This document shows positions 17,063-56,834 of a DNA stretch of 64,000 nucleotides, one piece after another; position 1 is the stretch's first letter; the number at the start of each line of letters is the position of its first letter. The notes beneath the pieces were generated by a model. The model worked only from the letters and a program-made list of their open reading frames with translations. It made no database searches and had not been told where the DNA came from. A program made the position numbers and the translations under genes. Origin of the DNA: Andalucia godoyi And28 (taxonomy: Eukaryota; Protista; Jakobida); the NCBI GenBank assembly GCA_009859145.1, contig VRVR01000053.1, positions 62,001 through 126,000 on the forward strand, in the 5' to 3' direction.

Positions 17063-17436
17063 CCATCTATTCTATCATTCGTTGGTTTCACTTTTTTTGG
17101 TTTCACTTTTTTATTCAAATATGGGAGCGAGTGCGCTGGGATGACGCATTCGCCTACGCCTACGCCGCTCGATACAGGGCCTCCGAGGTCCCGCAGACCT
17201 ACTAAGAGACCACGTGTCACTACGCCTGCTGCTAGGGCCGTCAGAATCAAAATGCACCCTTCTCAGGAACAACATGTCACGCTGAGAAAGCGGCTCACGG
17301 ATTGATCGAGATTGGGAACGGAGCGCGGAGCATTTATCTGAAGATCGCCGTGGGGCGTGTTGGGGGGCCTATCCCCTTCCCGGCAACGGGATGCAAGACT
17401 GCGTATGCATGTCTATTCGTAGATATGCATGTTCAG
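17063..17436 (+). mobile_element. Fz-A: internally deleted, non-autonomous Fanzor2/TnpB-like element (left end tentative)
   Basis: The 54-aa ORF 17141-17305 carries the TnpB/Fanzor N-terminal motif RAVRIKMHPSQEQHVTL. It is fused directly to the RuvC-III motif IDRDW[+G]NGARSIYLK (17301-17343, one extra G at 17316), followed by three stem-loops and a terminal CAG at 17434-17436. A 15-mer tandem repeat lies at 17082-17111. Confidence 0.82.
17344..17436 (+). ncRNA. Putative omegaRNA scaffold of Fz-A (5' boundary uncertain)
   Basis: Stem-loops TCCCG-GCAA-CGGGA (17378-17391), ATGC-AAGACT-GCGT (17391-17404) and the 11-bp ATGCATGTCTA-TTCG-TAGATATGCAT (17405-17430). The 13-mer GATGCAAGACTGC is shared with Fz-C. 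Confidence 0.65.
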
Positions 17437-17479
17437 TGTGTAATGTAGGCGCAACTCCAGGCGGAGCTTCTGCACCGTA

Positions 17480-17680
17480 GTTGATGCTAAACGACATGCA
17501 GTTGATACATACCTAACAAAGGAACGGAGGGGTTTCCGCAAAAGGCGAAGCGGGAAAAGACGTGGAACTGCTCCGACGCTCGGGAACGGTGGACCGCCAC
17601 GCTCTGGGGAAGCCAAGCAACAAAAGACCGACAAATCGGGAAAAGCTCCTGCTTTTGGGTCCTTTTCACTTCCCAAAATG
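17480..17680 (+). pseudogene. Fragment of a Fz-B-subfamily Fanzor ORF (WED-like region)
   Basis: GNGGPP and APAFGSFSLP match KNGGKPP and AAFWSTFIP of Fz-B. The DNA AAGCTCCTGCTTTTGGGTCC-TTTTCACTTCCC aligns with Fz-B AAGGTGCTGCTTTCTGGTCCACTTTCA-TTCCC. Confidence 0.55.
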
Positions 17681-17949
17681 AGAAGGACATTGTTTGACAT
17701 TCTGCAGATGAGCAGAATCAAAAAGGTTCCGAAATGCTCTCGTGCTGTTGTTGTTGTTTCCATCTTTCCGAATTCCCGAGCGAGGACTTTTCTCGGTTTT
17801 TTTTTGGGGGGGGGGGGTGGGGGTTATTTTGTTATTATTTTTTTTAAACCCCCCTCGAGCTTTTAGAGCGCGCAATTTTCCTTCCTGCAGAATATTAAGA
17901 GCATCTTTTGGCTTCTGCAGGCTGCATCGTGCACGAGGGTTTCAAGGTT

Positions 17950-20900
17950 ATGTGGCGCTGGATACTGCTGCCAGCGCTTTTCTTTCAGATTGTGTATTCG
18001 CAAGATCTGTATGGCGCGCAGTTGTACTCTAGGTGGTTGGGACCATCATATTTGACGTTCGAAATCACGTTTTTAGAAAGCGTTCGGCTTGGTTTTACGT
18101 ATACTCCGCTCACGGTGCTGCTGGGAGACGGGGCAATTGACACATCCTCGGGTATTCTCCTCCGAAGTTATAACGCTAGCATAGGAACGGTGCTTGAATA
18201 TGAAAGGAACATAGTGCATACGTATCCTGTTCCGAAGGTTTGGTCCGTTTCTGTTCAAGATTGCTGTCGAGTCCCTCTGTTGAATCAGCAAAACTTGGCG
18301 TATTCGTCATTTCGCCTGGAAATCACTGTTGACTGTTCGTCTGCTGCTGTATCTTCTTCCTCGTTCTTTCTCCCACGGCCTGTGTTCCCGTCCGTTTACG
18401 AATATGAAGCGTCGCAAATTTTATCATTTCGAATTCCCGTAACTTCTCGAATCAAGCAACGATATCGCTGCTCGTTGTCTTCTGCTGTTCCGGCTCCTTC
18501 TCGCAATGGATTGGGCGCGGTTGTTTCAACAGATTGTTGGTTTTCCTGGGCTGCGACGTTTACTCTTCCGGGAGAAGCGTACGTTGTACAACTGCTGGTG
18601 GCTGATAGTAGTTCTTCGTCCTCCTCCTTGATTGAATTTCTTCTGGTCGCGATTCAAAGAAAACATAGTGTTCAGTGCCATGTGCACTCTGCATCGGAGG
18701 GTCCCATAGAGCTGGATCCGTGGACCGCTTCGTTGTCTGTCACCAGCATCAGTCCACTCTTCAATGATACAACAGCACGTTTCTTTTCTTTGAGTCGCAC
18801 TCCTTCTTCTACATTTCCTCTAGAAGAAGGCTCCAGAGTGAGTGTTCCGTCGACGGTGAATGTTACGTACAGTCCTCTCTTTCCGTTTGAAGAAATTGAT
18901 CGAACGTGGATAGTCTCTGCGATGTTTCGCGACGTCAATAATAGCGCTCATTTTTGCTTCCTGGAGTTTCAAGTTAGCCGGAGAATGCCATCCATTCGCG
19001 CCTTTCATGTTGTCGATCCGACCAATAATGACAGTTTTCTTGGCATCGGCGACGTGTTTCAGATCGTTTTTGATTCATTGGTGAACACTTCGGCTCCATA
19101 CGATTCTTTTCTTTGTTTCGATCCACCGCTGCCGTCCGGTCTCTCTGTCCAATCTGATTTTTCAAATTATACCACCACCGAATATTTCAAGGGAAGACAG
19201 GGTATGTTAGTGAATGCTTCTGTTTTAACATTGCGGGTTCTGTCAGTTCCAGCGGCTTTCGAATTCATGTTGAGATCCATTGATCTCGTCGGGATTACGT
19301 CTGCGTATGTATGCTCTGCGGCACTTGTAGATGATTCTGGGTTTTCGGTCCAATCGCATTTCAACAGTTCTTTTGCGGTCCTGACGGGGTCAGTTGGATT
19401 CCGTCGACCGCCACATATTGTTGAATTCTCTGTCAGTGACCCTGATTACTCTGATGGAGTTCTTTCAGTTGGGGATGAATTTCTGGTTCGATTCTCCGAG
19501 TATGTTTCGATTCCCGCTGCACCGTTTTCTGACTTTTTGGAATTCCTACCGTTGGACCGTTCTCTTGCAGTCGTCACGAACTGGACAGTATCATGGTCCA
19601 ACTACAATACAACTCTTCGGATTTCTGTTGACGCTCTGAACTTCTCGAATCCTCTTGCTTTCGCTCCTGTGATTGGCATGACTTCGGTGAAGCTGAAAAA
19701 TAATATCGTTCAGGACTTGTATCACAAGTCGATTGCCGACGATCGTGATTCGTTGAATTCTTTTGTTGTTTTGACGGGGGATTTTGGACGCCGTGTGGGT
19801 CCCAATGTATCGTCACTAGTGGTGTATGACCGATTCAGCACTAGCGAAGACTGTGGCCGGGGAGATGTCCTTGTGGCATGCTTCGATTACCCGACGAACT
19901 CCCCTCGCATTTCTTCGAAAATTGAAATTGACTTGTTGTTTGCATTCTCTTCCTCAATTGGCGATGATTATGCTGGCTTGTGGACGAACGCGTCGTGTGC
20001 TGAAATAGAAATTCTGATCTCTCCCGTTAATTCAACATTTTCCCCCGGTTTACTCTCCATTTTCGTCATCGGACCGTTGCGCGATTTTCGAAAAGAAATG
20101 CGGCCTTCTGTTTCGTCCAGTGCAGTTCTCTCGGGATCCTGCGGACTTGCGATGCCGAATGATTCCATCGTCTCATTAGTCGCGGCTGATCCAGACAACC
20201 TGGATGGAGTATTTTCTGCAGGCGATACCATTGATGTTCAGTTCAACTTCAATGCGACGATGTTGGAGCCGTTTGGAAATGGTACGTGTGGATCTGAACG
20301 AACGAATTTGGATGCTGTTCAAGCTGCTAGGATACTTGCCTTTTCACACCCTTTCCTTGTTAATTTCAGCCTGGAGATCAGTCCCGGAGGGAAGTGGACA
20401 ATCCGAGTTCTTGACGTTGACGTGAACGCCGCTCCGCCTCCTTTTGGTCGGTTTTTCCTGCAGGTCTCGTCTGCTTGCATTATGGGTCTGCACAATGCCA
20501 GCAATGCAAATCTCCGGTCTCCTCCATTGTCAGGGAACTGGGGCGAGCTTATGGCCCCTCGAATTGTCGACTTTCTTGCACACGACCCGGACGACGGTGA
20601 TAATGTGCTATCACAAGGCGATCAGTTGACGGTCGTTTTCGATCGATCGACAAACTCTCCGACCATTTCGGCATCCGAAGAGTTGTTGCGATGTTTTGCA
20701 TTTTCTCCCGTTCTTGATATTGGGCTTTCTGCCGTTTGGAACGATTCTCGATCTGTACTTCTTACCGTTGTACAACCCCTGACTGCGAGTGAGTCACGAT
20801 CTTATTTTCTTCTTGGTTCTCTCCAAATTTTTGTACGCCGAGAATGCTTCTTGAGGGATGATACGAACACAAGCTCTGTCAGCGAATCAGTGTCGCCGGT

Positions 20901-23900
20901 TCTGCGTGGCAACTGGGGCCGCCGTGGTCCAGTTTTTGTGGACGCTCCGCTCGCATTCGATCCCGGAAACAGGGATGCAGTGTTCTCGAACGGAGATGCG
21001 ATTCGTCTTGAGTTTTCTGAGCCAACTAACACGCCTCCGGTGAATTCGAAAGCTGAGGTTGATTGCTGGCTATCTTTTTCGGAACCTATAGGGTCAGCGT
21101 ATCACGGTTTCTGGTCTCTCAATGGAACGGTACTGACGCTTGTTGTCACCGAAGTTGGCTTCGTCGATGCTCCAAGAATAGGCTTGTTCACGGTTAGTGT
21201 TATCGGATTACTGCAGAGCGCATCGGGCGTGTCTTTGGTCAGTAACGTCACGTCGCCCCCGCTTAAGGGTGACTGGGGAACATCCCGCTGTCTGTTCGTT
21301 TCGTCTTTTTCTGTTGTTGACACAGGATCACCATCTGCCTGTCAGACGTATGGCTCTGAAGACATTTTTTACATCTTTGTATCGCGCCCGGTGGACATGC
21401 CGCTAAACTCCTCAGTCACATTATCCCATTTTAATGACCACTTTGAGTTCTCTGACAATTCGTTACTGGATTCCTCCTCGACAGTAACTTACGTTGAAGA
21501 CACGCAAGGTGCGTATTTTTTTCGAATTCAAGCTGCGCAGAGTGTGTCGCTACAGTCTCGAGCACCAAAAATTGGCGTTTCGAGGATCGGTTTTCGGCCG
21601 TCATCTGATCTCATGGATGCCGCACATAATTGCCTTCCAGGAAACAATAGCAAAGCTGTTCTTTCCGGATCGTATGGTGTTGGTGTGCCCGTAACAATTG
21701 CCAGGTTTTTTGCAGCAGATTTAGATGACTTGGATCGTGTTCCCTCTGTTGGAGATGTCATTTGGGTGGAATTTTCTTCGAACACATCAATGCCATCTGT
21801 TTTTCCATGGGCAAACTTTGTGACTGTGTTTTCCTTGGACGCGATGCTGTCGAAATCCGCAGTGTTTGCTGCGTCCTGGACACGCCCCGACTTGCTACGA
21901 TTGGATGTTATGGCGGTTCTGGACGAATCCGCTCTGATTTCATTCGTATCTGGAGTGGCTGTGAAGATTTCAGTCCGGTCCCCGTCTTTGTTGGACACCT
22001 CTCGTTGTTCGAGCCTTGTCTTTTCCATCAGCCCGCAGCTCACTGGAAATTGGGGGCGGTTGTCTCCCCAATTGCAGTCGATTTCCTTTGATGATCCTGA
22101 TGATTTGGATGCCATTCTGTCTGTTGGAGACCGATTATGTCTGTACTTTGATTCCTCGACGAACCAGCCGACCCTTTCTGGTGGTCTTCTGGAATATGTC
22201 GACTTTGTTTCGAACCCGAACGCACTCAATAATGCTACGTTTTCTTCTCTGTGGCTGAATACTTCCACACTGTGCTTTACCATCACGTCGCTACCAGCTG
22301 CAGTGGTGTTGCCTGTCATTGGCTTCGACGTTTTACACATCCGTTCGAGCGCGGGTATACAATTAGCTGGACACGGGTCTCTGAATTCTACGTCGTCGGC
22401 TGTTTTGGCAGGGAACTTCGGGACACTTCCGGGTCCTGCAATTATATCGTTTGTTGCCAGTGATCCAGACAATTTGGACGGCATCTTTTCGGCATTCGAC
22501 GTTTTTCTCGTGACGTTTGATGGACCTACAAACTGCCCAAACGTTAACTCCAAATTCTTGATTGATCAGTTGATTCTGTTCTCAGGTGCTGGATTTGGTG
22601 CCGATTACAATGCAACTTGGTTGACTTTGGCTACGCTGAAAATCGTTGTGCTCAACGTTGGCACCTTGACAAGAGCATCCAGTCCCCGAGTTGGATCCTA
22701 TCGTATTTCGATTCGATCATCCGGTAATTTGAAGAACTCCATGAATACGTCGCTGCCAAGTTCTGCATGGTCCCCCGTTCTTTCTGGAAGCTTGGGTGCG
22801 TACAGCGGACCCTCGATCGTGGACTTCGTTATTTCGGACCCGATCGATGTGGACCATTCTTGCGGCGCTGGTGACGTTCTTGAGATTCATTTTTCAGAAC
22901 CGACAAACATGCCACCGCTGCAATTTCTCGCAGGTTCGACACCACAGACCAAGTACATGAGTCCTCTGGACAGTGTTTTCTCATTTACCGCTAGCATTGG
23001 AGCATCCTATCGAGGCTACTGGCATAACGCGTCTGTTGCCCGCGTTGAAATCCTGCTTTCGTCTTCAGTTGTTAGCTCCATCCAAATTGGATCGCTGCGA
23101 GTTACGTCTCTGGCAAATGGGGATATAGCGAATCAGGGAGGCTTCTCGCAGGCCTCTGCGTCTGTTTCTCCGGCTCTTCGTGGCAGTTGCGGGTACGGTG
23201 GCCCATCCATCACATCCCTTACGGCGATTGATGCTGATGATGCCGATGGAGTTTTTTCCGCTGATGATGAACTGGTCATTACCTTCAGCGAGGATACAAA
23301 TACTCCGGATATCTCTCGGATGGATCTTGTCGATGAGGTTTTTTATGTTCCACCACCGTACTCTTTGGGAACTAATTACACAGGCGAGTGGGCAGATCCA
23401 CGAACAGCTCGAATTCATGTTCGCAATGCCGCTATTCCTGCAGGGTTCTTTTATCCATTGGTTGGTGCGCTCGATTTCTTCATACAAGTTAAGAACACTT
23501 CGGGACTCGCAGATGGGTCTGGTCTCGGAAACCTTTCCTTTTCTTTGAGTCCTGCTCTGGCAGGTTCGTGGGGAAACCGCCAAGGTCCTTATATAACGAG
23601 CATCATCGCGGACGGAGATGATGCTGTCGATGGTATATATGGCGCCGGGGATGTGTTGTACGTGACTTTCAATGAGTCGACAAATGAACCGCCGATGACG
23701 ACGCACGCGCAACTTGTCGCAGGCTTTTTTGTGTGTCACACCCCTCCTTCATGCATTGATCCGAATGGACACACTTTGGGAACTCTCACAAGCGGGAGAT
23801 GGGTGAATTCTTCAGTTTTACTGATTACTATACTTATTCCCGGGACCACGATAGCTTCAACTCCGATAATAGGCCGAACGCTCATTGCACCCCGTCAAAC

Positions 23901-26900
23901 TGCAAATCTGCGAAACAGTGGATCTTGGTCTCTCGTGTCGTCGTCTCCGTCCCCGTCCTTAGTTGGAGATTGGGGCTTGTTTCCCGGCCCTCGGATCATT
24001 GAGTTTTCATGTCGCGATCCAACAGATTCTGACTACTGGTACGGAAACGGCGACGAGATTATGATACGATTTGATTCTGGAACGAACACCCCACCTGTTT
24101 CTACAATGTCGCAGTTTGATGCGCTTTTCAATTTCTCGCATGTGATAGGCAAGATGTACAAAGCTATGTGGAAAAATGACAGGGTACTCATCATCTCTGT
24201 CAGCGATGTTACAAATGGTACTCTGCAGCTGAATGAAACCCAAGTAAGCATTTTATCTTCGATCCGGAATTCGGCAGGGATCTCGTCTGTGCGTGTGGGT
24301 GAGCTCTCGCCCTTCTTATCTGGTGACTTCGGTAAGAAGGGGCCGTTCATTTTGTCCTATGTTGTTTCTGCTCCCAATCCTGCGACGGATGGGATTTTCG
24401 GAGAAACAGACGTCATTTCGATCGAGTTTTCAACACCAACGAATGTGCCTCCTCTGTCAACAAAAGCCCTAGTGGACTCGGTATTTTTCTTCAAGCCCCC
24501 CATCGGACAAAACTACTCGGGATCGTGGACTTCGTCAACTACTGCAGTCATAACGATAACTGCATTTTCTGGAGTACCGAGAGAGAGCCGTCCTCAGATT
24601 GGTGCATCCACGGTGCGCGTCCGAGAAACTTTACGGAACGACTCGCTGACGTCCTACGTTTCGGTGAGTGAATCACCGCTGTTGAGTGGGTTCGTTGGAA
24701 ATCGATCCGGTCCTGCAATTGTTTCATTCGATATTTCCGATCCGGATAACAGTGACCGAGTTTTGTCAATTGGAGATGTTTTGGACATTTGCTTTTCCGA
24801 GCCTACGTCCATCCCGTTGCTGTCATCGACAGCGGCGGTCAATTCTGTGTTTTCTTTTTCAGCTTCCATTGGAGCAGCATATTCTGGGCTATGGAGCAAC
24901 TCATCTTGTGCAAGGATTGCTCTGCTTAATATTTCTGGAAACGACATTCGTCTTGGAAATCTGTCTGTTTCGGTGCAGTCTGGAGTGTTGTATGATGCTT
25001 CTTCCGTCTCACTTGCAACAACTCCGGTGTTTTGCTGCCCTTTACAGGGAAATATGGGTCTTCAAGGACCACAGATTGTGTCCTTTGTTGCGGATGACCC
25101 TGATCAGGCGGACGGAATCGTAAGCTCGGGTGACACCCTGAAAATTTGCTTTGATCTTCCAACCAATCGTCCAGAAATACTTGCGCACAACCAAGTCATT
25201 TCGATATTTCGGTTCTCCGCTCCCATTGGACAAAATTCAACCGGCACATGGGAGACTGATTGCTGCGCTTTGATTACGATTGAAGATGCTACGACTTCAT
25301 CAGAATTCGAGACCGCTGTCGGTCACTTGCGTGTCTCTGTCATTGGAAATTTACGCGACTCAAACTCTTCTCTGCTGCCGTCGAATTCTTCGTCAGGCCC
25401 TGTAACTGGGACGTTTGGGGATCGTGCCGGGCCCCGGATCGTGTTCTTTGACGTCTTTGATACTGATGACCTCGATCGTGTCTGGTCTGCCGGAGACGTT
25501 CTCCGACTGTGCTTCAATGAGAGCACCAATACTCCGGAGATATCTACTCCGGAAGCAGTTTCCAGCTGCTTTGCATTTTCTCCCGTTTTGACAGGAGTTG
25601 CTTTTTCCGGGACGTGGTTTAACTCATCTTGCGCTGACTTGACCGTTATTTCGCTGGATTTTGGATCTGCACCGCCCCTGCTTCATGTCACTATTGTTGA
25701 GGTACGGTTTTCTGCTGCACTGCGGGACGCCAAGAACGTCAGCCGTCGCTCCACTTCTCAGTCACCTCCCCTAACTGGAAATTTCGGTAGATTTCCTCCG
25801 AATATTTCCGGGTTTGAAGTATCGGACCCTGACGATCTTGATCGTGTGTTGTCAAGCGGTGACGTACTTACGATTGAGTTCGATATTCCCACCAACACTC
25901 CTGCGGTATCTTCATCCTCGGAAATATTTCAAGTTTTCGGCTTTTCCAACAATCATTCGTTTGCATCAGCGCTGCAAGATATCTCGGGTTTGTGGGTGAC
26001 TGACAGGACGGTCGTTCTGAACCTGACGTTTAGAAACTCGCCAATGGCATCTACCTTGATACTGGGCCAATCAGTTGTGTTTGTGTTACCTTCTGGAAGG
26101 TTGTATGATCGGAGTCTGTCCTCGATCCCGTCTTATCAAACGTCACCACCGCTCTCCGGATCGTTTGGGAGGTTTCCTCCTCAGTTGGTGAAGATGGAGG
26201 CTAACGATCCAGATAACTCTGACATCTTTTATTCTGTGGGAGACGAGATTGTGTTGACCTTTGATGTGCCAACTTGCAAGCCGGATCTGACTTCGAAGGT
26301 CAACGTTGATGCAATGCTAAATTTCTCGATTCCCATAGGACTGATGTACGATGGTCTTTGGGATGCTTCCGGAAAGGTGCTTCGAGTACGTATTTTGATT
26401 GCGTATCCGTATCCAGCAGACGTCTCGACAAACGCTCTTCTTTTTTCTCGACTCAATGTCACGTTTGGGGGAAATTTTCTCTGGGGTGAGGATCGTCTAC
26501 TGCTTCCTCTGGTTGGATTTTCGAATGTTAATTTGACTGGATCCTTTGGAGAGAGGGCTTCTCCGATCGTGTCTGCATTTGTCGCGAGCGATCCGGATGA
26601 TGGGGATTTCCAAATGTATAGCATTGGCGACGTGCTTGATTTGCAGTTTTCCGAAGCGACAAACCAGCCGCCACTCTTCCAATACTTGGTGTTTTCTCAT
26701 TCGGTCGGGATCTTGAACGGCTACTGGCTTTCTCCATCCATCTTCAGACTCGTCGTTCTCAATGTATCACATGCGAATGTTACAATTGGGAACCTTTCGG
26801 TGGCAATCCCGGAAAATGCGAACTTGCGATCAGCTGGCAATGTTTCTTATGCTCTTGACTGTTCAGGTGTTGTCCTCGCAGGTAATTTTGGAAGGCTGCC

Positions 26901-29900
26901 CCCGCACATTGTCGCCTCCTACGTGTACGACCCTGCGGACGATGACAATGTTTGGAATACTGAAGATGTTCTCCAGGTAGTTTTCAACAGCCCGACAAAT
27001 CGTCCAAACATTGGTTCTTCCTCTAATGTTAATTCGCTCATTCTCATTGAGGACTTGTTTGGAGTACCACTGCTTCCTATTACCTCGTTTGTTGGGTATT
27101 GGAATAATGAAGGTGATGTTCTCACCTTAGTTGTTCAGGTTGCGGGAGCTCCGATCGTCCCCGGTCTTCATGTTGTCCGGCTCAGAACCAGTGGCAATTT
27201 GAGGGACTCGTCGGGCGTTAGTCTTCCTTCATCAGCCCGGAGCCCAGCAATATCCGGAAACGTTGGAAGGTTTCCTCCGACGATTTTGGCGTTCGTCGCT
27301 GACGATCCTGATGATCTAGATCGCATCTATTCAGACGATGATACACTAATGATTGTCTTTGATCGCCCGACGAACCAACCGCCATTGTCAAATTTGTCAT
27401 CTGTTTTGGTTTTTTCCAATCCGTCTTCAGTTGCAACAAATGTATCCGCGAGTTGGCTGAACTCGTCTACCATTTTAATCAAGATGCTAACGGTAATCCC
27501 GGATGCTCTATTAATTGGGAATTCCTTTGTATCCGTCTTGTCTTCTGCAAATGTTACAGATCCGCTCGGCATCTTGAACCCCTGCAATTCCAGCAGTCCT
27601 TTTCTTTCGGGTGACTTTGGACGTTTTCCTTTGAGGGTAGTTTCGTTTTCTGTCCGCGATGACGACAACACGGACATTTATTTCGGTATAGGTGATGAAT
27701 TTGTGTTGGACTTTGAAGGCCCAACCAACCAACCATTTATGGGGTCAAAATCTCTTGTTGATTCACAGATCGCTTTTTCCACGTCCATTGGAGACAACTA
27801 TTTCGGATATTGGGAAAGTTCTTCGAGACTCGTAATTCAGGTGCTTGCTGAATCGTCATCTCCAGTGTATGGCAAGACGAATGCAACAAATGTCTTCCTT
27901 TTTGCGCACTTGAATGCAACGCTACGAGGACTGTCAATTCAAGACAATCTGCTCTTCCTAAATCCTTCGTGTGCAACCACGCCTGCTTTGCAAGGCACTT
28001 TCGGAGAAAGGAAGGGGCCTAGGATACTTGCTTTCATTGCTGCGGATCCTGACGACAACGATTTCCAAGTGTGGTCCGTCGACGATACGCTAACGTTGTT
28101 GTTCTCTGAGGATACCAACATGGTTGACATTGCTCCTTTCCTGGAATTTAGCGATTCGGTCGGGGTATGGCGTGGAATCTGGGTCTCCCCAAAGGCGTAC
28201 ACTCTTACCATCACCGACGTGAGCAATTCACTGCCCATTATCGGCTCTTCGAATGTGACTCTCCGTGACTCTGGCGGCCTTCGATCCGCTGGGAACGGGT
28301 CGTATGTGACGCATGAAACTTCTCCTCCCCTTGCGGGAACATTTGGAAGAAAACCGCCACAAATCTTGAGCTGTCATGTATGGGACTCCACTGACGGAGA
28401 TCACGTGTTCGGACCTGGTGACCTGGTGCAGCTTGTCTTTGATTCTCCAACTAACCGCTTGGATGTCCAATCCGTCGACAATGCTAGTCTGTATTTCCAA
28501 ATGTTGCTTCCCCCTCAGAATTTGAGTGCTACATTCACGGGATCTTGGTGGAACGACACAGTCCTGCTCCTGAACGTTTCGGGATTCTCGGGAATCCAGC
28601 CGGTTGTCAACCAGTCGCGATTTCGACCATTGCAGTTTGGAAACACGGGCGTTCAGGATCCTACTCTGTACAGCATTTTCTCTACTCAGGCAAGTCCACC
28701 GTGTGAGGGAACGTTCGGACGCCGAGCACCGTTTGTGGTCTCTCTACAAGCACTGGACCCCTACAACGACGATCGTGTCTGGGACGAAGGCGACAAAATC
28801 CGCATCCATTTTAACCGTCCTACAAATCAACCACTGGTCAACAACAAAACAGCGATTGACAACCTTGTGAGATGGATTCCATTCCCATTAGCGAACAGTT
28901 ATAACGGAGAATGGCTGAATAGTAGTGTCCTAGAAATAACATTCCGCGATGTGCTCTCAACTGGACCTCTCATTCATAATACTACCATAGCCATCCTTCC
29001 GCAAGGGCGACTACAAGATTCAACATTAACCTCCCTCATAGCAAACGAAACCTCCGCAGTATCCCTAAGTGGAAATTTAGGACTTCTTGGTCCGCAGATC
29101 CGTGCTTTTTGGGTGCGGGATCCGACAAATTCCAGCGTTTACTTGCAGGACGGCGATCAATTTATTATTGACTGGGAGATGCCGACGTCACAGCCGCCAC
29201 TGGCGTCGAAGGCGCTGGTGGATTTGGAGTTCAACTTCAGCATGCCCTTGGGTCTTAATTACTCTGGCTCGTGGTTATCGTCTTCGCGGCTTGCCATTAC
29301 GGTTCTTGCGGCGTGGCCGGATTATGTCAGTGTACCGTCCACTCTGGACTCGTTCTTTGCCAATCTCACGGTGAGCGTTTTGGGCCGGTCTATCCGCAAT
29401 GCGTCGCTGGATCTTGTGCCGTCGTTAGCCAGAACTGCCCGGGGTGCGCTTGGAGGGTCATTCGGATACAGACTTGGACCGTCGATTGTGAGTGTCGTGT
29501 GTGACGATCCTGATGATGGAGACTTCCAAGTGTTCGGCGCAGGTGATACCGTGACGATTTTGTTTTCTGAGGCGACGTCCATGCCGTCCGGAATTGGATC
29601 GTTTTTGACGTTCAACCAACCGTTCGGACAGTTTGTGTGGACGTGGGCGGACAACCGGACGCTTGTGCTGGACGTGACTGATGGGCAAGGCAAACAGCCC
29701 GATATTGCCAGTCTTCGCGTGAGTGTGCCTTTCGAGGCGGATTTGCGGGCAGCTGGGAATGTGTCGCTTCCGTCGAACACGACGAGTGCTGTTGGTGGGA
29801 CGCGTGGCGATTGGGGTCGGCGTTCTCCGATTCCAATTGCGGCGTGGGTGGATGATCCAGACAACGCGGACTACTATTTTTCCGCTGGAGATGCAGTGTA

Positions 29901-32900
29901 CGTCATGTTTGACATGCCGACGAATCAGTTGTCTTACACGGGCACGTCTGTGGTTGCGGACTGCTTTGTGTTTCAAGGGCTGTCCAGCGGAACTGTTGTG
30001 AACGCAACTGGTGCATGGCACAATGCCACAACACTCCTGCTGACGGTAACTGCTGTTGCGACGGTGAATGGGAAGCTGCTGGAACACGAGGACGTTGTTG
30101 GGTTGATGGCTGTGAGTGTGCTGTCGTGTGCCAATGTCACAGAACACACGTCGTACTCACTGCCTGCTTCGTCAGTGAGCTCCCCGAATGTGACGGGAAC
30201 TGTGGGTTTGCAAGCGCCGTTTGTTGTGAAGTGGTGGGCAGATGACCCGGATGACGGTGATCGGGTGTGGTCGGATGGCGATGAGCTGTTTGTGTTGTTC
30301 AACCGTCCGACGAACACTCCGATAATCGCAAGCTTCGATGCATTGCAGCGGCTTCTTGGAGTTGTAGCATCGACAACTCGCAGCGGGGTGTCGAACGGGA
30401 TTGGATTGAACGCAACTGCGTGGTGGCAGAACTCAACGTTGCTTGTTGTGCATCTGTTGAATGTTTCTGCCGTTGGCGACTTTGTGGTTATGCAGACGCG
30501 TGTCTGCGTTTTTTGGTCAGGGGGCCTCAGGGATCATGCCGGCCGTTCTTTGGTTTCTAACCAGACGAGCGGGCCAGTATTGGACGGGGATGTAGGACTT
30601 CTTGGTCCGCAGATCCGTGCTTTTTGGGTGCGGGATCCGACAAATTCCAGCGTTTACTTGCAGGACGGCGATCAATTTATTATTGACTGGGAGATGCCGA
30701 CGTCACAGCCGCCACTGGCGTCGAAGGCGCTGGTGGATTTGGAGTTCAACTTCAGCATGCCCTTGGGTCTTAATTACTCTGGCTCGTGGTTATCGTCTTC
30801 GCGGCTTGCCATTACGGTTCTTGCGGCGTGGCCGGATTATGTCAGTGTACCGTCCACTCTGGACTCGTTCTTTGCCAATCTCACGGTGAGCGTTTTGGGC
30901 CGGTCTATCCGCAATGCGTCGCTGGATCTTGTGCCGTCGTTAGCCAGAACTGCCCGGGGTGCGCTTGGAGGGTCATTCGGATACAGACTTGGACCGTCGA
31001 TTGTGAGTGTCGTGTGTGACGATCCTGATGATGGAGACTTCCAAGTGTTCGGCGCAGGTGATACCGTGACGATTTTGTTTTCTGAGGCGACGTCCATGCC
31101 GTCCGGAATTGGATCGTTTTTGACGTTCAACCAACCGTTCGGACAGTTTGTGTGGACGTGGGCGGACAACCGGACGCTTGTGCTGGACGTGACTGATGGG
31201 CAAGGCAAACAGCCCGATATTGCCAGTCTTCGCGTGAGTGTGCCTTTCGAGGCGGATTTGCGGGCAGCTGGGAATGTGTCGCTTCCGTCGAACACGACGA
31301 GTGCTGTTGGTGGGACGCGTGGCGATTTTGGATTGTGTGCTCCGAAAATTCAATTCTTCGTAGTATATGATTTATTTAATGCTGATTACGTATTCAGCAC
31401 CTCGGATCGTTTTGTTTTGGTATTCGATGTCCCCACAAATCAAATGGATGTGTCTTCTCCACAAGATGTTGAGAAATTGTTTGCTTTCTATCCGCCGCTT
31501 AATGCGGATTTAAGATTCTGTGGAGCTTGGTTAAACTCATCCGCAATTGTCTTTGAAGCTCAGGTGTCGAACTTTTCTTCTCCACCTATAATTGGGTCGC
31601 AAACAATTTGTACGCGCCCGTTGTCTGGCATTCGGGATTCTCACAACTCGTCGGTTGATGTGGGTATTTCGTGTGCTGTTTTGTCTGGAGACTTCGGACG
31701 GATGGCTCCGTATATTGTTTCGTCCTGGTTCGACGACCCCGACGATGCAGATCGGTACTGGAGTTCCGGAGACATGTTGTTCGTTGCATTTGATCGTGCT
31801 ACCTCGTCTCCTCCATTTTCTTCATTATTCACTGTTGATGACTTATTTGAATTTCAGAACATTCGTGATCCCTCTCTTCCTGTTTGCCTGGACTGGATTG
31901 CACACTGGATGAATTCGTCTTTGGTGAAATTGCAGTGTAACGCTGCGGTTGATGGACAACTGATTCCCAACGTTGCTGCGATAGCAGTGAAGTCAACGGC
32001 GGGCCTTACTTCGGCGGATGGGATCTCATTTCTGTCGTCTGCGGGTTACGGACCTATTGGGGGTCATGTTGGTCGACTTGGACCACAGATCGCAAAATTT
32101 TGTGTGAGGGATGTTTTGAACGACGACATTCATTTTGGTCAATCTGATTGCTTCGAAGTTTGGTTTGATCTTCCAACTAATCGTCCTGAACTTCCCCCAT
32201 ATTCCCTTTTCAATTTCTCTTTGCCTGATCTTGCCAAAAATTTTACCTGGTCGTGGCATAACTCTTCTGTGTATGAATTTTGTGCAAGTACTCCAAACTT
32301 CGAGCTGTATCCTCCGGATGTTGAAACCGCTAATCAAATCATGTCGACGTTGGTTATCAGCGTTCAATGCGATTTGCGCTCAGCAGACCTGTATTCTGTC
32401 CCTTCCCGTTCATTGTCGTTTTTATCAGGTAGTTTTGGGGATCGTTCAGGACCAAGAATTATTGGCTTTGAAGTATTCGACCCTGATGATTTAGACCGTG
32501 ATTGGTCAACAGGAGACGTACTGATTCTTACATTCAGCGAAGCAACAAACACTCCACAACCAGTTTCTATCTTCGATTTGCTAATGTTTTCTGATGATCC
32601 CGGTCCCTTGACATATCATTGGCAAAACAGCTCGACATTAGTAATGACCAGTCTCGGACATAATTCCGTTTCATCATTCCGTCTTGGAGTGTCTTGTGTT
32701 TCCGTATTATCAAGCGTTGTGCATCTTCGCGACAGCCTGAACAAATCGCTTGCCTCCATCGCCCGTTCTTCTCCATTGTCCGGTACTTTCGGAAGGATGG
32801 CTCCAGTCATGACGTCGTTGCTAGCGGTGCCGAGTACGGCCTCCTTGGACGCCAGGCTATCCGTTGGCGACAGATTTCGAATTGTATTTGACGTCGAAAT

Positions 32901-34347: not shown

Positions 34348-34479
34348 AAGTCTTTGAAACCAACGGAGACAAGTTTCCGTTTGTGAGCACATTGTCTAGG
34401 GTCAAATCCCACCTTGTCATCTGAAAACGTATGTTGAAGCGTTATCCTGTTGGCTAATCGAACTCTTGACAGAGTCACC

Positions 34480-35580
34480 GACACTACTGGGGGTTAACAG
34501 CCTGTCGCACAGACGGATTGCAAGGGAAAAGATGCACAACGTCGAAATGTCCTCAAATCGGCTCTGTATTTTTAACAGCCTATATCATCCAGATGCAAGA
34601 ATGTCGAGAAACCCGTCCTCAGTCAAAATGTCCTGCATTCAACAGAGTATGGGAAATCTGTGATTTCTGCTGCCACGGCACGGACAACGAAAACTCCATT
34701 ACGTTAAAGAAAGGAGTGACTCGTAATGGAGTGAATGGCTCGCACATCCCACATAACCAAAACACAAACGGAATCGAATAAATAATGCAACAATAAGGGG
34801 CAATGATGTTGCTGTAATGGAATCACTCATAAAATCGTCACCGCAAGCCACTTCACCGCGGAACCTAGTTATCGCGTGAGAAAGTCGCAGTATGAAACGC
34901 CTGAGTCTGTGGATGCTTCCGTAGAAAATCGAGGAACCGGCAATTCAGAAAACGTGGGTGCCAAATGCAGACTGCATCATGAGAAATGCTGAAACGGATC
35001 GCCAAACTGCTGCCAGCGAGAACGCCAGCCACCGCATGAATGTGCTTTCGAATGTCTATAGAGCAATCCTCATCTTATCTGGAAATGCATCAGATGTCTT
35101 TTGGATGGCAGGGGTGAGAAATTGTGAAAATAAGTTACCGTTGCTTCAGCACAACTTGCCAAAATAACAAAAAAAAAATGGATGCCGCCGCAGATGAGTG
35201 CAACAAGATTTTGTCATGTAACGGTGATAATCAGCGATATCTCCTTTTAACAGCAAGACATTCTCGTTTTGATGGTGAGAAGACGATGAATAAGATCTCG
35301 GATCAACTTAAATTGTAAGGTGCTTCTTTGAAGACATTCTTGAATACCAAACAGTCAGCGACAATTCAACCAAATGTTTTTTCCTCCTAGCCTAAGCCAG
35401 CAACAGTTGGAAGAAGGGTGACAAGAATTATACGAATAAATAAGACCCGCTAGTTCAGATCTATCCAGAAAGTTATCCAAACGTGCCGTAGCCATCAGCA
35501 GAGGACCAGGGTGTGGAGATGGCTACTTCAAACCAAAGAAGGAGGACTACCGGCCAAAAGGAGAGTTTTCCGGTTGTTCG
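34480..35580 (-). pseudogene. Possible decayed GT-B (GT4-like) glycosyltransferase pseudogene
   Basis: Stop-riddled minus-strand frames give, in plausible order, KTLLLAGSPP..HLHTL.LC.WLR, then HIHAVAGVLAG..LA....AVCIWH, then TLLNAGHFD.G. The resemblance is weak and by eye only. Confidence 0.25.
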
Positions 35581-37429: not shown

Positions 37430-37580
37430 TGGTTCAGCGCTTCCCATAACAAGTATGTTGTTGGGTGTTTTCAGTCCCACGCAAACACCTCCCCCTTATT
37501 ACGAGGAGGTTGAAAAGGGGCTTGGGTGTTGGCAGACTCCAATGTAGTCTCCAATACACTCCACACCCAAGATCGCAACG
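37430..37580 (-). ncRNA. Putative omegaRNA scaffold of Fz-B, overlapping the ORF 3' end
   Basis: Perfect 9-bp CTTGGGTGT/ACACCCAAG stem enclosing GGAGTCT; ACCTCCTC/GGGGAGGT hairpin; TGCGTGGGACTG (37483-37472); CCCA..TGGG hairpin (37465-37443). Confidence 0.55.
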
Positions 37581-39063: not shown

Positions 39064-39291
39064 TCTTCTGCTGTTTTCTTGCTGTTGAGAAAAACGAGGA
39101 TTGTGCGTTGGGATTTCGGGAAAGATGGAAAAAGAAAATCGTGGAAATGCGTATGTTTTATGTCAGCCGTAGCCCACGATATTTTTCTCAGCGGAGAGTC
39201 GGAAAATCTCACTTCTTTCTCCTGACGTCTTTTTCCAAAATTCCCATTTTTCTCCTATTATTCCAATCCATGCAATTCACATATACCCACA

Positions 39292-51188: not shown

Positions 51189-51222
<34 letters not shown>
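51189..51222. repeat. (GT)17 microsatellite
   Basis: Direct reading of the sequence. Confidence 0.95.
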
Positions 51223-51228
<6 letters not shown>

Positions 51229-51317
51229 GGAAAGACGTTGAAACAGACAAGATCAACTGCTTGCATGCGGAGGGAAAAAGGAAAGCAAAACGCAAACAGC
51301 ATCATCATCGATTTCTG

Positions 51318-52196
51318 TCAGCTCGGACGAGTCGTCTTCATCAAGATGGAAAAATGGATGTGATCTGAACGAAGCCCCTCAGGGACCAATTTCCACCACT
51401 CCACCGGCGGAATTCTCGATACTGTGAAACTCCCTGCAACACTTTGGAAAAATAAGTCCTGCGCCTCCTTGTTTCGAATCTCGGAAACACAGAACACGAC
51501 AGTCGCATCCGTGCAGAGATTGTTCAACGTGCCGACCAATGCGTCGGCTGACGCTTCTGAATAGATGCAGTCTGCAAGAATAACAAGGTCCGGGTATCCG
51601 TGTTGGTGGATATACGACTCCTCGTCTGCTGCATTTCCCCAAGAGAGCTGCATTGCGTGAACGCGGTTTCCAACGTGATTTGCGACTATATTCTGCTGCA
51701 TCACTGGCACTAACTGCGGGATGTCTGTGATGACGACCTCTGCACCCAGAGCACCGACGAACAAGCCTGGTAGTCCCACTCCAGCACCAAGCTCAAGGAC
51801 CTTCAGCTTTGAAATACTGAGCATCCGATGACTGTGAACAACATACTTCCCAAGCTTCTTGTTTCTGCTCGCTTCGGTTTCCAACCGCGTCACAGCCAGC
51901 ATGTAGCAGCAAAAAACCTGCGCAGAATCCCATATGTATCCACCCAGATGCGGGGAGTGGGGGTCTTGCAAAATCCGAATCTTGTGATTTGCAACGTAAA
52001 TATCCAGACTCTGCGCCGCCTGCGATGTCCAACGGTCCAAAGACGACATTTCAACAGTCTTGAACACTCCATCTTCCCACAGATTCAGATCAACACGGTA
52101 CAAGGGCACGTCGTCACGAAGAACAGAATACATCACTGGAGGCGGAAGTGCAATCGGGAAAACATCTGATGGATGCGGATACGACGGAACGCTCAT
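51318..52196 (-). CDS. METTL21/Nnt1-like (Methyltransf_16) protein lysine methyltransferase (292 aa from the first ATG)
   Basis: GGYIWDSA, VLELGAGVGLPG, VVITD, LSWG and LVILADCIY motifs. The ORF track starts at a GTG in low-complexity intergenic DNA. Confidence 0.92.
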   Translation of the reverse strand: MSVPSYPHPSDVFPIALPPPVMYSVLRDDVPLYRVDLNLWEDGVFKTVEMSSLDRWTSQAAQSLDIYVANHKIRILQDPHSPHLGGYIWDSAQVFCCYMLAVTRLETEASRNKKLGKYVVHSHRMLSISKLKVLELGAGVGLPGLFVGALGAEVVITDIPQLVPVMQQNIVANHVGNRVHAMQLSWGNAADEESYIHQHGYPDLVILADCIYSEASADALVGTLNNLCTDATVVFCVSEIRNKEAQDLFFQSVAGSFTVSRIPPVEWWKLVPEGLRSDHIHFSILMKTTRPS

Positions 52197-53101: not shown

Positions 53102-54232
53102 TTGGAGGCATGGCCAAAACTGCAGGAACGACCCGAAAAGACGTACGATGTTTTCAAGACAGGTGCTTCGGAAACGGGCCGCAGGCAGAAAGCTGCACTT
53201 CTTACCAAACGACTCTCTACAAGAGCGCCCCAGCTTCGCGAGCTTTATGCGCGAACTATGATGGCGCATGTACGTGTGTACTGGGGGGGCCTTGCCCCTT
53301 AGACAATTGATTTGTGGGATCGATTGTCATGCAACATTGCAATAGCAGCAGGCGTTTCCACAAAATTCAATTCCGAAATTCCGGCAATTACTTCGTTTTG
53401 CCAAAAAGAAAACATTGAATAAAACACTGTTGTGTTCATATATTGATATTTTTCCTTTTATTTGGCACCACGTCGCCGCACTTCGCCGCGCGTTGTCGGG
53501 TTTATCCTTTTCGTCTTCCTCATCCTTTTCCTGCTTTCGGGACCCTAGTTGTCGCCGCCGACCGTAGTGGTTCGAGCAACGGCACCTTTTTGAGTTTCTC
53601 TCTCTTTTGTTCGTTCGTTCGTTCGTTCGTTCGTTCGTTCGTTCGTTCGTTCGTTTGTTCGTTTGTTAGTTTATTTGCTTCTGTTTTTTCTTGTGCTTGT
53701 TATCTTTTCTTTGTGCGTATTTCTAAAATAACGTAAATAGTAGTTTATTTCAGTTTTAAGAGTACTCTTTATTACAGAACCACCACATCGGTGTGTGCCA
53801 TCCGGCGAGCCCATCGAGAAGCGGTTCAGGAATTTCGAGCTAATCGACGCGTACTGCACGACGAAAAATAAATGCTGCGGCTGTGGAAATAACCTTGGAT
53901 TACCTTTTCTTTCGGTTCCGCCAGCAGCCAAAGAGGGGTGCGCATGAAGATGTCTGCGAATCCAGCCACTCGCCGCGAGCGATTCGTGCCCCCGGAGGGT
54001 TGAGACACTGGGCCACAGCGAACTGTCCATCTAACCGCCGAGGCATGGACCGCGATGAACATTCGTCAGTCCGGCCGCAGTTTCTTGTGTCGGAATCCAC
54101 CGGGTATTCCCAGTGCAAGCGAGTTGGAGTCTGGTCTACGGCGTCCCTGAAAGCTGGGTGCGAGGACTACGACCATTTCCCTGCATTCTGTGCATTTGAG
54201 GTAAAATGGAGGTGTTGCCCTCACAGGCGCAG
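53102..54232 (+). mobile_element. Fz-D: heavily degraded Fanzor2-like element (Fz-B subfamily); ends approximate
   Basis: N-terminal-like KRLSTRAPQLRELYART..HVRVY (53102-53302) and DLWD. Bridge region RRKIN....ITLDYLFFRFRQQ (to 53927). PGGLRHW..NCPS..GMDRDEH (54045-54062). 3' motifs TTGGAGTCTG (shared with Fz-B), TGCGAGGACT (54159-54168), a hairpin, and CAG at 54224-54226 or 54230-54232. Confidence 0.6.
53609..53652. repeat. (GTTC)11 microsatellite inside the Fz-D relic
   Basis: Direct reading of the sequence. Confidence 0.93.
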
Positions 54233-54289: not shown

Positions 54290-55693
54290 GTGCTTCGCTG
54301 TCGAGCTTTTCGCGCTGTGGACGAAGGAGATCGGGGAAACATGCGATTCCATACGCTGCAGAGCTTGGACGTTGCGTACTTCAAAAGAATCGTGCCGTCC
54401 GTGCTGACGGGGACCGCAGAGGAGCTGAGCCGTTATAATCGGGATTGGATGGGAAAGTTCATGGGATCTTCGGGTGTCGTACTGCGGCCGACTTCGACTT
54501 CTCAGGTTTCCGACATTCTGCGGTACTGCAATGATCGAAGAATTGCGGTGGTTCCCCAGTCTGGCAACACTGGTCTTGTTGGGGGGTCCGTCCCGGTGCA
54601 CAGCGAAGTTATTGTGTCGATGGAATTGATGAACCGCGTGGAGAACATCGATGCATCTCGTCGACTATTGAAATGTGAATCTGGCTGCGTTCTCGGAAAG
54701 ATCAATGCAGATCTGTTGGCGCATGGTCTTGAAATGCCGCTCGATATGGGATCCAGTGGGTCGTGCATGGTCGGTGGCAACGTGGCCACGAACGCAGGAG
54801 GCATTCGGTACATCAAGTACGGAGGAATGCACAGCACCGTGCTTGGTCTCGAAGTTGTTCTTCCAAATGGATCTACCATGGATCTAAACTACAGCGCAGC
54901 AGTAATGAAGGATTCTACAGGACTGCCCATCAAAGATCTCTTTATCGGCTCGGAAGGCCTACTGGGCATCATCACCAAAGTAGCAGTTCGTCTGTTCGCA
55001 AAGCCGTCCAATCCGCAGTTGTTACTTGTTCGAACTTCCTCGAGTACGAACATCAGCGATTCTGAATTTGCGATTCCCGACTTCTCCGCAGTGGAAAAAG
55101 TGCACTACCTGACCCAGCGACACCGCGTGCAATTGTCTGCATTCGAAGCATTCAACCACTGTGTTCTTATCGAATCTGATGTTCCGTTCTCCGAAGACTT
55201 CGTTTCCAGTTTGTCCAACCTCTTCCCGTCATCCTCCATTGCGCAGTCTGAGACGGAGCGGCAATCCATGTGGCGTTTGCGCGAACAAATGCCTGTTCGT
55301 GCATCTCAACGAGCGAAAGACTTGCAAAAGACTCTGCACAAGTTTGATGTTTCCGTTCCGATCCACAACTACACCGAATTTTGCACAGATGTCGACAGGA
55401 TAGCACGAGATCATTTGAAGGACCCCGGAGATCCTCCAACATCCATTTACGGACACTATGCAGACGGAAACCTCCATGTGAACGTCGTTGGGACGTTTTC
55501 AGAAGCTGCCGAGAACGAGATCTATGACGCGGTGTGCAAGTATGGAGGGTCCGTTTCAGCAGAACACGGAATCGGACTCATGAAAAAGGCGGCACTGAAA
55601 AAGCAAAAGTCTGCAGAGGCGATCCGCATTATGCGAGGAATCAAGAGTGTGTTCGATCCACACGGAATCATGAACCCGGAAAAGGTCATCTAG
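54290..55693 (+). CDS. D2HGDH: D-2-hydroxyglutarate dehydrogenase (FAD-binding oxidoreductase/transferase type 4); start at GTG 54290 or ATG 54341
   Basis: VLRPTSTSQVSDIL.YC....AVVPQSGNTGLVGGSVP, GSC.VGGNVATNAGG, LFIGSEG.LGIIT, YGHYADGNLH, GSVSAEHGIG..K and FDPHGIMNP.K motifs. Confidence 0.95.
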   Translation: MLRCRAFRAVDEGDRGNMRFHTLQSLDVAYFKRIVPSVLTGTAEELSRYNRDWMGKFMGSSGVVLRPTSTSQVSDILRYCNDRRIAVVPQSGNTGLVGGSVPVHSEVIVSMELMNRVENIDASRRLLKCESGCVLGKINADLLAHGLEMPLDMGSSGSCMVGGNVATNAGGIRYIKYGGMHSTVLGLEVVLPNGSTMDLNYSAAVMKDSTGLPIKDLFIGSEGLLGIITKVAVRLFAKPSNPQLLLVRTSSSTNISDSEFAIPDFSAVEKVHYLTQRHRVQLSAFEAFNHCVLIESDVPFSEDFVSSLSNLFPSSSIAQSETERQSMWRLREQMPVRASQRAKDLQKTLHKFDVSVPIHNYTEFCTDVDRIARDHLKDPGDPPTSIYGHYADGNLHVNVVGTFSEAAENEIYDAVCKYGGSVSAEHGIGLMKKAALKKQKSAEAIRIMRGIKSVFDPHGIMNPEKVI

Positions 55694-55712
55694 CCCGAAA
55701 GCTACCGCTCGC

Positions 55713-55850
55713 CTGGAATGTACACGAAACATGGCGAATCAAATTGCCGACCCTTCACATGCAGTCTTGCATCGGAACCGAAGATGGTTTTCCACTCAGA
55801 AAAAAAAAAGGAGGGGGACGGGGGAGATAGGCTCCAGTACGCCGAAGTGT
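55713..55850 (-). ncRNA. Putative omegaRNA scaffold of Fz-C
   Basis: GG-AA-AACC-ATCTTC-GGTT-CC hairpin, perfect ATGC-AAGACT-GCAT stem-loop, GGC-AAT-TTG-ATT-C-GCC hairpin, terminal TTCCAG. Confidence 0.55.
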
Positions 55851-56834
55851 TCTTCCAATAGATGTTGCGCACATCATTCCAACCTCGATCTTGACGTGTC
55901 GGAATGACGATGTGGTCGGGCGTGAATGAAAGAACAGGCGAAAGGAATAGCATTGTCTGAAATTTCTGGGTATGTGGGGGTAAGGAATGGTAAAGAGTGG
56001 ATAGCAAGTTGGAACGTTTGGTATGTGTGCAGTACGATGGATGTCAAGGCTGGCTTGCTTGGGAACGGTGCGCAATGGCCGTGGAAGCCAACGGAAAATC
56101 TGCTTCAGAATCCGATTGTCGCTGAAATCCCTGTGTCCGTTCCTCAGAAGACGGGAGAGTGTCGGTATTGCCATCGCCGTAGAGCGTCATCTTGCGATGC
56201 TCTAAAAGGATATCGACATTTCGCATGATATTGTACAGACGAAATATAAACACTTGGATTCTATCCATTGCTGTTCATGTGTCAGTTGCCCCTTCTTTTC
56301 CTGCCTGTTTCGTCCTCTTTTTTGTTCCCCCACCTCTTTATGACCGTTCTCTTGTTTTTCGAAGCAGCAAAGACATTTCATTGCTTGCCGCCGAGCTTTT
56401 TTGCTGCCATGCTTGATGCTGAAAGTGCTCGTATACGACAGAACGAGTGTTGCGCAGTCTCTCCAGCGCGTCAAGCTAGCGACTTACGGCATTTGCGGGC
56501 AGCTCTTTCAGCCTCTCTCTGTCCAGGGATGCGTCGAACTGGAGAGACGGAACACTGCTGAAGATCCCTTTTAGCAAGTCTCGCTAGGCTTGACAGGCTG
56601 AACGGGAATACTGTGCAGCGACTGGTTAAAAAAACGGTGCCGACTTGCTCTTCAACGGCGCTCTCTCCTGCAGAGGACTTCGAGTGAACTGTCAAATCAG
56701 CAAAACATGCTTCATTTAGTTTACGGAACCCCCTTTCTGGTGGTGTTTTTTCTGCACCCGGCCGATTGAAGTCGCGATTTCTGGTGCTCAGCGGGCGGGT
56801 CTTCTCTTGATCTTCGCTGGAACTGTTCAGTCAT
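55713..56834 (-). mobile_element. Fz-C: degraded Fanzor2-like element (Fz-A subfamily); left end approximate
   Basis: RuvC-III-like DRGWNDVRNIYWK (55890-55852) aligns with Fz-A DRDWNGARSIYLK at protein and DNA level. It also has GGAGCCT (55835-55829), an exact GATGCAAGACTGC (55773-55761), a hairpin, and CAG ending at 55713. Upstream remnants: KIKRRP/AEHQK..L..AGCR (~56814), LKELPANAVSR, GTDTGI, LDIHRTA. Confidence 0.78.

Follow-up and report, generated by a model that had tools for sequence, protein, structure and literature searches.

Among the known systems, the one closest to the elements considered here is the Fanzor2 nuclease ApmFz2 (Acanthamoeba polyphaga mimivirus L79), which has a zinc finger, an N-terminal basic extension and a D...E...D catalytic triad, D324/E467/D501, whose Glu has been relocated (PMC11832414). 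Downstream of its open reading frame (ORF) lies a conserved noncoding region of about 200 nucleotides (nt), which serves as the scaffold of the guide RNA and stops at the element's right end, with the guide itself derived from the flank (PMC10530073, PMC11832414). Two further groups are relevant: the prokaryotic TnpB proteins with a rearranged catalytic site (TnpB2 or "pro-Fanzor", IS607/IS605), which belong to the same fold family and likewise have a relocated RuvC-II Glu and a right-end omegaRNA, and Fanzor1 (e.g. SpuFz1, PDB 8GKH), also a eukaryotic TnpB descendant and RNA-guided nuclease, the omegaRNA of which is without the TnpB-like core (PMC11832414). Here we describe a 64,000-nt stretch of nuclear DNA from the jakobid Andalucia godoyi (contig VRVR01000053.1, positions 62,001 to 126,000; the whole of this stretch is referred to as the window), which very probably holds the decayed remains of Fanzor2-type elements, i.e., of eukaryotic or viral TnpB, belonging to two subfamilies and with all copies inactive.

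A first-pass annotation of the window, made from the sequence alone, had proposed four such relics and one additional fragment. The four loci are labelled here by position as E17 (+), E37 (−), E54 (+) and E55 (−); E37 was confirmed and E17 and E55 gained support, whereas E54 and the fragment were left without statistical backing.

E37, a pseudogene of the TnpB/Fanzor superfamily

The largest of the relics occupies the following position:

37492–39063 (−): E37, Fanzor2-type pseudogene, nearly full-length (protein search, tblastn, profile)

It starts with MTRRR at 39063 and ends with the tandem stops TAATAA at 37497–37492. Four intact relatives from environmental assemblies, P0001 (655 amino acids, aa), P0002 (645 aa), P0003 and P0007, were available for comparison, and a rough translation of E37 joined across frames matched the first two with E values of 1e-61 and 1.5e-47, respectively, at 95% coverage. 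When P0001 was compared with the DNA by tblastn (E 2e-51), its residues 1–646 were found to be collinear with E37 from 39063 down to 37544. A protein profile for which 151 relatives contributed 196 aligned stretches matched seven stop-free pieces of E37 in order (frames 2, 0, 0, 1, 0, 2, 1; E 1e-21 to 1e-3), and since these collinear pieces change frame, at least five frameshifts and one in-frame stop must be assumed. The six-frame search with this profile found nothing at E17, E54 or E55, or anywhere else in the window outside E37.

A deletion of about 66 residues, corresponding to P0001 residues 550–615, lies between 37644 and 37636 and has taken out the relocated catalytic RuvC-II Glu together with the first CxxC, although both Asp residues are kept; owing to these losses E37 has to be regarded as a dead member of the family. 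The retained parts include the N-terminal basic region, the WED/REC domains, RuvC-I (SCDGGGR) and RuvC-III (PRDQH). Motif matrices (position-specific scoring matrices, PSSMs) were derived from 141–151 relatives and scanned against both DNA strands with frameshifts allowed and with 100 first-order Markov-chain nulls; the RuvC-III motif of E37 scored 21.2 bits, a value reached by one null in 100. From its sequence, E37 is beyond doubt a pseudogene of the TnpB/Fanzor superfamily.

More precise placement was obtained with a profile of 10 relatives, for which the best match in the PDB was ApmFz2 (9B0L, E 3.6e-50, residues 35–509); TnpB and Cas12f entries were matched only in the C-terminal part (E 1e-10 to 1e-17), and no Fanzor1 structure was matched at E < 0.01. 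Invariant in the 10 relatives are four Cys residues as well as D436, E591 and D628, which correspond to D324, E467 and D501 of the ApmFz2 triad (PMC11832414). Comparison with the same study (PMC11832414) locates the canonical Glu site at ILFPPL.T..M, in the relatives and in E37, and the relocated site at PEKYTT or SEPYTT in the relatives. Because the best PDB match is ApmFz2, Fanzor1 is not matched and the relocated triad agrees, E37 and its relatives are classed on sequence grounds as Fanzor2-like, closer to Fanzor2 than to Fanzor1 or to canonical TnpB. This agrees with the initial assignment to the TnpB/Fanzor superfamily with Fanzor2 as the nearest group. Intact relatives do exist, namely P0001, P0002, P0003 and P0007, all with a complete catalytic triad.

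The family nevertheless differs from ApmFz2 in several respects: identity is only about 25–30%, RuvC-I reads SCDGGGR or SCDSGAR in place of DPG, the WED motif is preceded by a longer N-terminal extension, of about 175 aa, no IS607 TnpA was detected alongside, and the copies in the window are dead. It is set apart from TnpB2 ("pro-Fanzor") by a eukaryotic nuclear host, long basic N-termini and far weaker PDB scores to TnpB/Cas12f. The search for an IS607-type serine recombinase, which had been suggested at the outset, revealed no remnant in the stretches examined near E37 and E55, and none was called beside P0001, P0002 or P0003. Fanzor2 copies that lack TnpA exist, so its absence does not exclude membership in Fanzor2.

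Relatives of this kind are rare. An exhaustive HMMER search over 1.84 billion representatives returned only four proteins at E ≤ 1e-30, against 1062 at the looser threshold of E ≤ 1e-10, and word-indexed searches of a protein collection that includes A. godoyi proteins returned eight proteins, none of which lists EukProt (the source of the window proteins); contigs were identified for only two of them, and both are environmental. Within the paper collection searched, none names both Fanzor and Andalucia godoyi, and the supplement of one survey has no entry for this species.

The environmental contigs bear on the question of whether E37 is the remnant of an integrated segment of a giant virus, or of some other large mobile element carrying a Fanzor2, and not a transposon of the host. 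By inspection, the contigs with P0001 and P0002 look virus-like, since they are densely packed with small ORFs that lack Pfam hits and include a paralogue pair and MORN-variant repeats; giant viruses are enriched for Fanzor2 (PMC10530073); subtelomeric scaffolds with transposon/viral-like sequence are mentioned in the A. godoyi genome paper (PMC7050145); and E37 itself lies in a lower-GC stretch beside 3 kb of ORF-free DNA. Against this, no viral gene or Pfam domain was detected in the flanks searched, nothing in the window matches any neighbour of P0001 or P0002, and in IMG/VR a two-sequence profile scan and a pattern scan for the 3' block (described below) found nothing, with a broader scan yielding only relatives at 22–31% identity. 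Taken together, we consider a viral origin of E37 unlikely and regard the decayed Fanzor2-type element as such as the better description.

Several observations accompany E37 and its relatives. The ORF-free DNA directly 3' of it (34350–37290, about 3 kb) has a GC content of 44–46% in a genome that is otherwise tightly packed; its seven longest stop-free pieces yielded no Pfam domain, and a larger insertion may once have stood there, of which it would be what is left. The L001 contig, which carries intact P0001, contains a tandem paralogue pair with 43% identity and a protein of WW.NG..HRLDGPA repeats (5559–7354, 9213–10064), and looks by eye like a giant-virus contig. P0007 adjoins hAT transposase fragments in a JGI contig (L161, 405–2326).

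The 3' region and its predicted closing helix

Four independent intact loci (L001, L002, L003 and L161) were used for comparison of the DNA downstream of the gene, and the same order was found in each: the stop codon, a hairpin, TGC followed by a variable segment X and, 88–182 nt further on, the reverse complement of X followed by GCGG. In the intact relatives the hairpin lies over or just past the stop codon and its stem sequences are unrelated, while X comprises 4–5 bases, the pairs in the four loci being TCAG/CTGA, TGAGA/TCTCA, TGAAG/CTTCA and TACA/TGTA. The pattern TGC-X...X'-GCGG, which has a background frequency of about 6e-5 per nt, begins 20–27 nt past the stop in all four. In a fifth relative the stop codon, the hairpin and GGATGC are followed by the end of the contig. 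Both the 5' and the 3' modules are conserved across L001, L002, L003, L161 and E37, the latter module consisting of a conserved block, TTGAT...TTTAAC..., the last bases of which are the reverse complement of the variable bases, and then GCGG; a matrix made from three intact 3' modules gave the module of E37 the top rank across the window. The corresponding features of E37 are:

37488–37509 (−): hairpin over the stop codons, CCTCCTC gtaataa GGGGGAGG; matched in the intact relatives by a hairpin whose stem is unrelated in sequence
37476–37489 (−): 5' strand of the closing helix, GGTGTTTGCGTGGG, which holds the TGC-R-N-GACT motif of the first-pass annotation
37291–37322 (−): 3' module TTGTTGATCAGTGTTTAACCAAGCGGCACACC, 3' strand of the closing helix, ending in GCGG

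The two helix strands of E37 (37476–37489 for the 5' and 37291–37304 for the 3' strand) pair with a single G-A mismatch, and the scaffold extends about 200 nt past the stop. As MAFFT misaligned the 5' ends of the full scaffolds, RNAalifold was replaced by counting on extracted helix strands: in five sequences, with strands extracted by hand, the closing helix showed a covariation of 0.545, compared with 0.20 ± 0.075 in shuffles (0 of 500 reaching it) and 0.07–0.20 in slid controls, with three positions having 2–4 pair types and no broken cell. Minimum free energy folding on its own also yields the helix for L002, L003 and E37. TGC-X...X'-GCGG is therefore a predicted covarying, long-range helix that closes an omegaRNA-like scaffold and is retained in E37. 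The overall layout matches that of ApmFz2 (PMC10530073, PMC11832414), although the closure predicted here is by a plain TGC-X/X'-GCGG helix; the ApmFz2 scaffold has a pseudoknot.

An omegaRNA-like scaffold common to all four loci had been proposed in the first-pass annotation from a common order of two short words, GGRGYCT and TGC-R-N1-3-GACT, and the hairpins that follow them. All eight word positions are correct, with GGRGYCT at 17364 (+), 37540 (−), 54126 (+) and 55835 (−), and TGC-R-N1-3-GACT at 17392, 37483, 54159 and 55771. Their significance, however, turned out to be uneven. The TGC word is part of the closing helix in the E37 subfamily, although the closing strand ending in GCGG, about 200 nt past the E37 stop, had gone unseen, and no partner strand or fold was recovered for E17, E55 or E54. 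The GGRGYCT word, by contrast, is coding and has to be dropped from the scaffold: it specifies the C-terminal I-G-V that follows IGDY in E37, and belongs to the in-frame C-terminal tail of E17 and of E55.

Two independent Logan contigs with P0007 (L162 and L163) end 1 nt after the GCGG of the closing helix, as would be expected at the boundary of a multi-copy element, and this suggests that the right end of the element lies there; in E37 the right end is likely at about 37297. The same contig breaks, together with the position of the 3' module at the right end, could also be taken to mean that the module is a transposon end read at the DNA level by a transposase or recombinase instead of an RNA scaffold. 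Yet the compensatory changes between strands 88–182 nt apart argue for a folded single strand, and since the omegaRNA of TnpB and Fanzor overlaps the right end, both roles coexist (PMC11832414, PMC10530073); an exclusively DNA-level function is accordingly held to be improbable, and an omegaRNA-like scaffold is preferred.

E37 is in all likelihood a whole element gone dead, with a predicted noncoding scaffold of about 200 nt located 3' of RuvC-III and composed, in order, of the stop hairpin, a few nt further on (GA)TGC with 4–5 variable bases, variable internal stem-loops, and the 3' block with GCGG, the two scaffold strands pairing at long range to close it. If TnpB and ApmFz2 are taken as models, an active ancestor would transcribe this 3' region as an omegaRNA whose guide would be the flanking DNA just past GCGG, and the resulting protein–RNA complex would, by the same analogy, cut matching DNA beside a target-adjacent motif (TAM).

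The simple DNA patterns TTGAY..AGCGG and GATGC..AGAYY were each not above chance when used alone. A set of 80 metagenome loci proved too distant, with no common 3' motif and the closing-helix regular expression at background level. The second-best match to the 3' module in the window is at 39169–39195 (+) (..TTTTTCTCAGCGGA, 13.8 bits), on the strand opposite to E37 and about 100 nt beyond its start codon, and is able to pair with GCTGTTGAGAAAAA (39081–39098 (+)), which lies some 95 nt upstream of it; this match may be due to chance or may mark the left end as an inverted terminal copy.

The shorter loci E17, E55 and E54

The features of the remaining loci are as follows:

17141–17305 (+): E17 short ORF with a basic stretch resembling a nuclear localisation signal (NLS), then RIKMHPSQEQ; not significant
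17304–17346 (+): E17 RuvC-III motif DRDW/NGARSIYLK, with a 1-nt frameshift
17364–17467 (+): E17 3' module with tail codons GGGGCCTATCCCC, hairpin CCCGgcaaCGGG, 13-mer GATGCAAGACTGC (17390–17402), a 12-bp hairpin and the block shared with E55
55849–55890 (−): E55 RuvC-III motif DRGWNDVRNIYWKN, in frame to a TGA stop
55705–55835 (−): E55 3' module with tail codons GGAGCCTATCTCCCC, T-run, stop, hairpin (55774–55793), 13-mer GATGCAAGACTGC (55761–55773) and the block shared with E17 (55705–55733)
53844–54168 (+): E54 claimed relic, one open frame with FRFRQ and CPSN..DRDEHSS, then TTGGAGTCTG (54124–54133) and TGCGAGGACT (54159–54168); unsupported

In the RuvC-III scan, the search space of which is 128 kb, the best three hits in the window were E17, E37 and E55, the next hit reaching 12.0 bits. 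E17, read across one frameshift, scored 30.9 bits against a null maximum of 21.7 (0 of 100 nulls), and E55 scored 18.5 bits, a value reached by 7 of 100 nulls. The frame of E55 is intact, with the RuvC-III motif followed by a 22-codon tail and a TGA stop, as in P0001. When corrected, the RuvC-III peptides of E17 and E55 match, by tblastn, the RuvC-III site of many relatives. At the DNA level the two loci can be aligned over a segment that begins in the RuvC-III codons and extends to GCCTATC-CCCC; the alignment scores 28, compared with 16 ± 2.1 (maximum 24) in 500 nulls, and both have the identical 13-mer after a hairpin. As the signal is about 14 residues long, and split by a frameshift in E17, these loci are missed by an ordinary profile search. 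The evidence from sequence supports E17 and E55 as short 3'-terminal stubs of a second subfamily.

The E17 short ORF may represent the N-terminus of a Fanzor copy that has lost its interior; its N-terminal motif, the NLS-like stretch with RIKMHPSQEQ, is suggestive without being significant. Within the E17 3' module the 12-bp hairpin is at 17403–17430 and the block in common with E55 at 17428–17467. This hairpin, ATGCATGTCTA ttcg TAGATATGCAT, is near-perfect and directly follows the 13-mer on the (+) strand; at the matching spot E55 has a weaker hairpin of unrelated sequence. The E55 module stops 12 nt from the stop of the neighbouring gene at 55693. As an alternative helix for E17, E55 and E54, the pairing of YTGGRG with YTC(A)CAG was considered and rejected, its three wobble-compatible changes having a chance p of about 0.125.

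E54 went undetected by profile, PSSM and frameshift-tolerant tests. Its best open-frame peptide gave p = 0.11 against the profile; frameshift-tolerant Smith-Waterman alignment was too permissive with lenient penalties and gave no signal with strict ones; PSSMs for the bridge block and zinc finger had no significant match in the window; and tblastn of the 151 relatives reached 31 bits at best against 22–28 in nulls, which is collinear but not convincing. The proposed grouping into two subfamilies holds for E17 and E55, as evidenced by their DNA alignment and the 13-mer, whereas that of E37 with E54 depends on two short words, i.e., one shared 10-mer and one word matching at 9 of 10 positions, which chance could produce across the whole window; no repeated DNA of at least 30 nt linking the loci was found. 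E54 is probably either a chance resemblance or eroded beyond proof. The extra fragment, which is probably RNRDFN near 56.78 kb (−), is not significant, and a RuvC-I-like match at 52071 (+) was rejected, being at chance level and inside another gene.

These results have to be set against the possibility that only E37 is real and that at 17.3, 54 and 55.8 kb the eye has merely selected motifs that resemble it by chance. The six-frame profile result, the p value of the E54 peptide and a p of about 0.07 for the E55 motif alone all point that way. So does the nature of the composite DNA pattern GGRGYCT...TGC-R-N1-3-GACT, which has exactly four occurrences in the window where 0.10 would be expected, with none of 300 first-order Markov-chain nulls reaching four, but which was fitted post hoc to those four sites; taken singly, its words are found there 24 and 16 times. 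On the other hand, the E17 RuvC-III score lies well above the null maximum, the top three RuvC-III hits fall exactly on E17, E37 and E55, the E17–E55 alignment over motif and tail beats all 500 nulls with the 13-mer in the same place after the hairpin, and the tblastn matches of both motifs fall on the RuvC-III site of many relatives. We therefore see little likelihood in a single real relic and retain decayed Fanzor2-type elements of two subfamilies.

A number of points weigh against that conclusion. The E37 pieces gave only sub-threshold Pfam matches (best E 0.0044), though P0001 and P0002 are above the cut-off of PF07282. Assignment to Fanzor2 derives from the best structural-database match together with shared sequence features, and no recombinase or other Pfam domain was found in stop-free pieces of at least 80 residues from the ORF-free DNA 3' of E37, nor in the three longest stop-free pieces around and upstream of E55. 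The closing helix is drawn from five sequences, with strands extracted by hand; E17, E55 and E54 have no 3' partner strand and no 3' module; and RNAalifold on these three gave −5.5 kcal/mol without a credible consensus fold or covariation.

A broader proposal can be made tentatively, and as a whole it is somewhat less probable than its negation. P0001, P0002, P0003, P0007 and the Andalucia relics may together constitute a rare, previously undescribed Fanzor2 subclade, characterised by a long N-terminal extension, an altered RuvC-I and a compact, readily predictable omegaRNA of about 120–210 nt from the stop codon to GCGG (stop-codon hairpin and TGC-X...X'-GCGG helix), with the guide right after GCGG; the intact environmental members would be active programmable nucleases, and mini-copies of the E17 type may be non-autonomous scaffold carriers. 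The relics add a jakobid (Discoba) host to the Fanzor2 range and show that decay of such elements is possible even where the genome is very compact and poor in introns. Comparison of a relic with its intact relatives provides a simple, testable rule by which the scaffold of the guide RNA and the right end can be predicted in a rare Fanzor2 subclade, which would make reconstitution of intact members easier, while the known picture of how Fanzors work is unchanged.

Setting of the window

The window has a GC content of about 49%, and both of its strands carry long ORFs free of introns; together with its microsatellites and a CCDC39 gene in a single exon, these features mark it as coming from a flagellated eukaryote. 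Its proteins were found by exact look-up in EukProt and NCBI, and one gene was placed on contig VRVR01000053.1 of assembly GCA_009859145.1, the nuclear genome of A. godoyi, a member of Discoba. The genome of this species is 20 Mb in size and intron-poor, and subtelomeric scaffolds with transposon/viral-like sequence were omitted from it (PMC7050145). The intergenic regions of the claimed relics also contain (GTTC)16, (GT)18 and (GT)20 microsatellites and a G/T homopolymer-rich tract:

53609–53671; 56919–56954; 51189–51229; 17795–17850: microsatellites and homopolymer-rich tract near the claimed relics

An ORF at 17908–34347 encodes a repetitive surface-type protein of 5479 aa with repeat units of about 730–770 nt. 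Inside it, at 29075–30889, there is a direct duplication of at least 300 nt, 100% identical and with a spacing of 1515 nt, due either to recent tandem duplication within the gene or to collapse/expansion during assembly. The sole Rfam match in the window is a tRNA; a tRNA-Lys(CTT) gene lies at 3522–3595 (−) between two protein genes, with a (TC)50 microsatellite nearby at 3794–3894.

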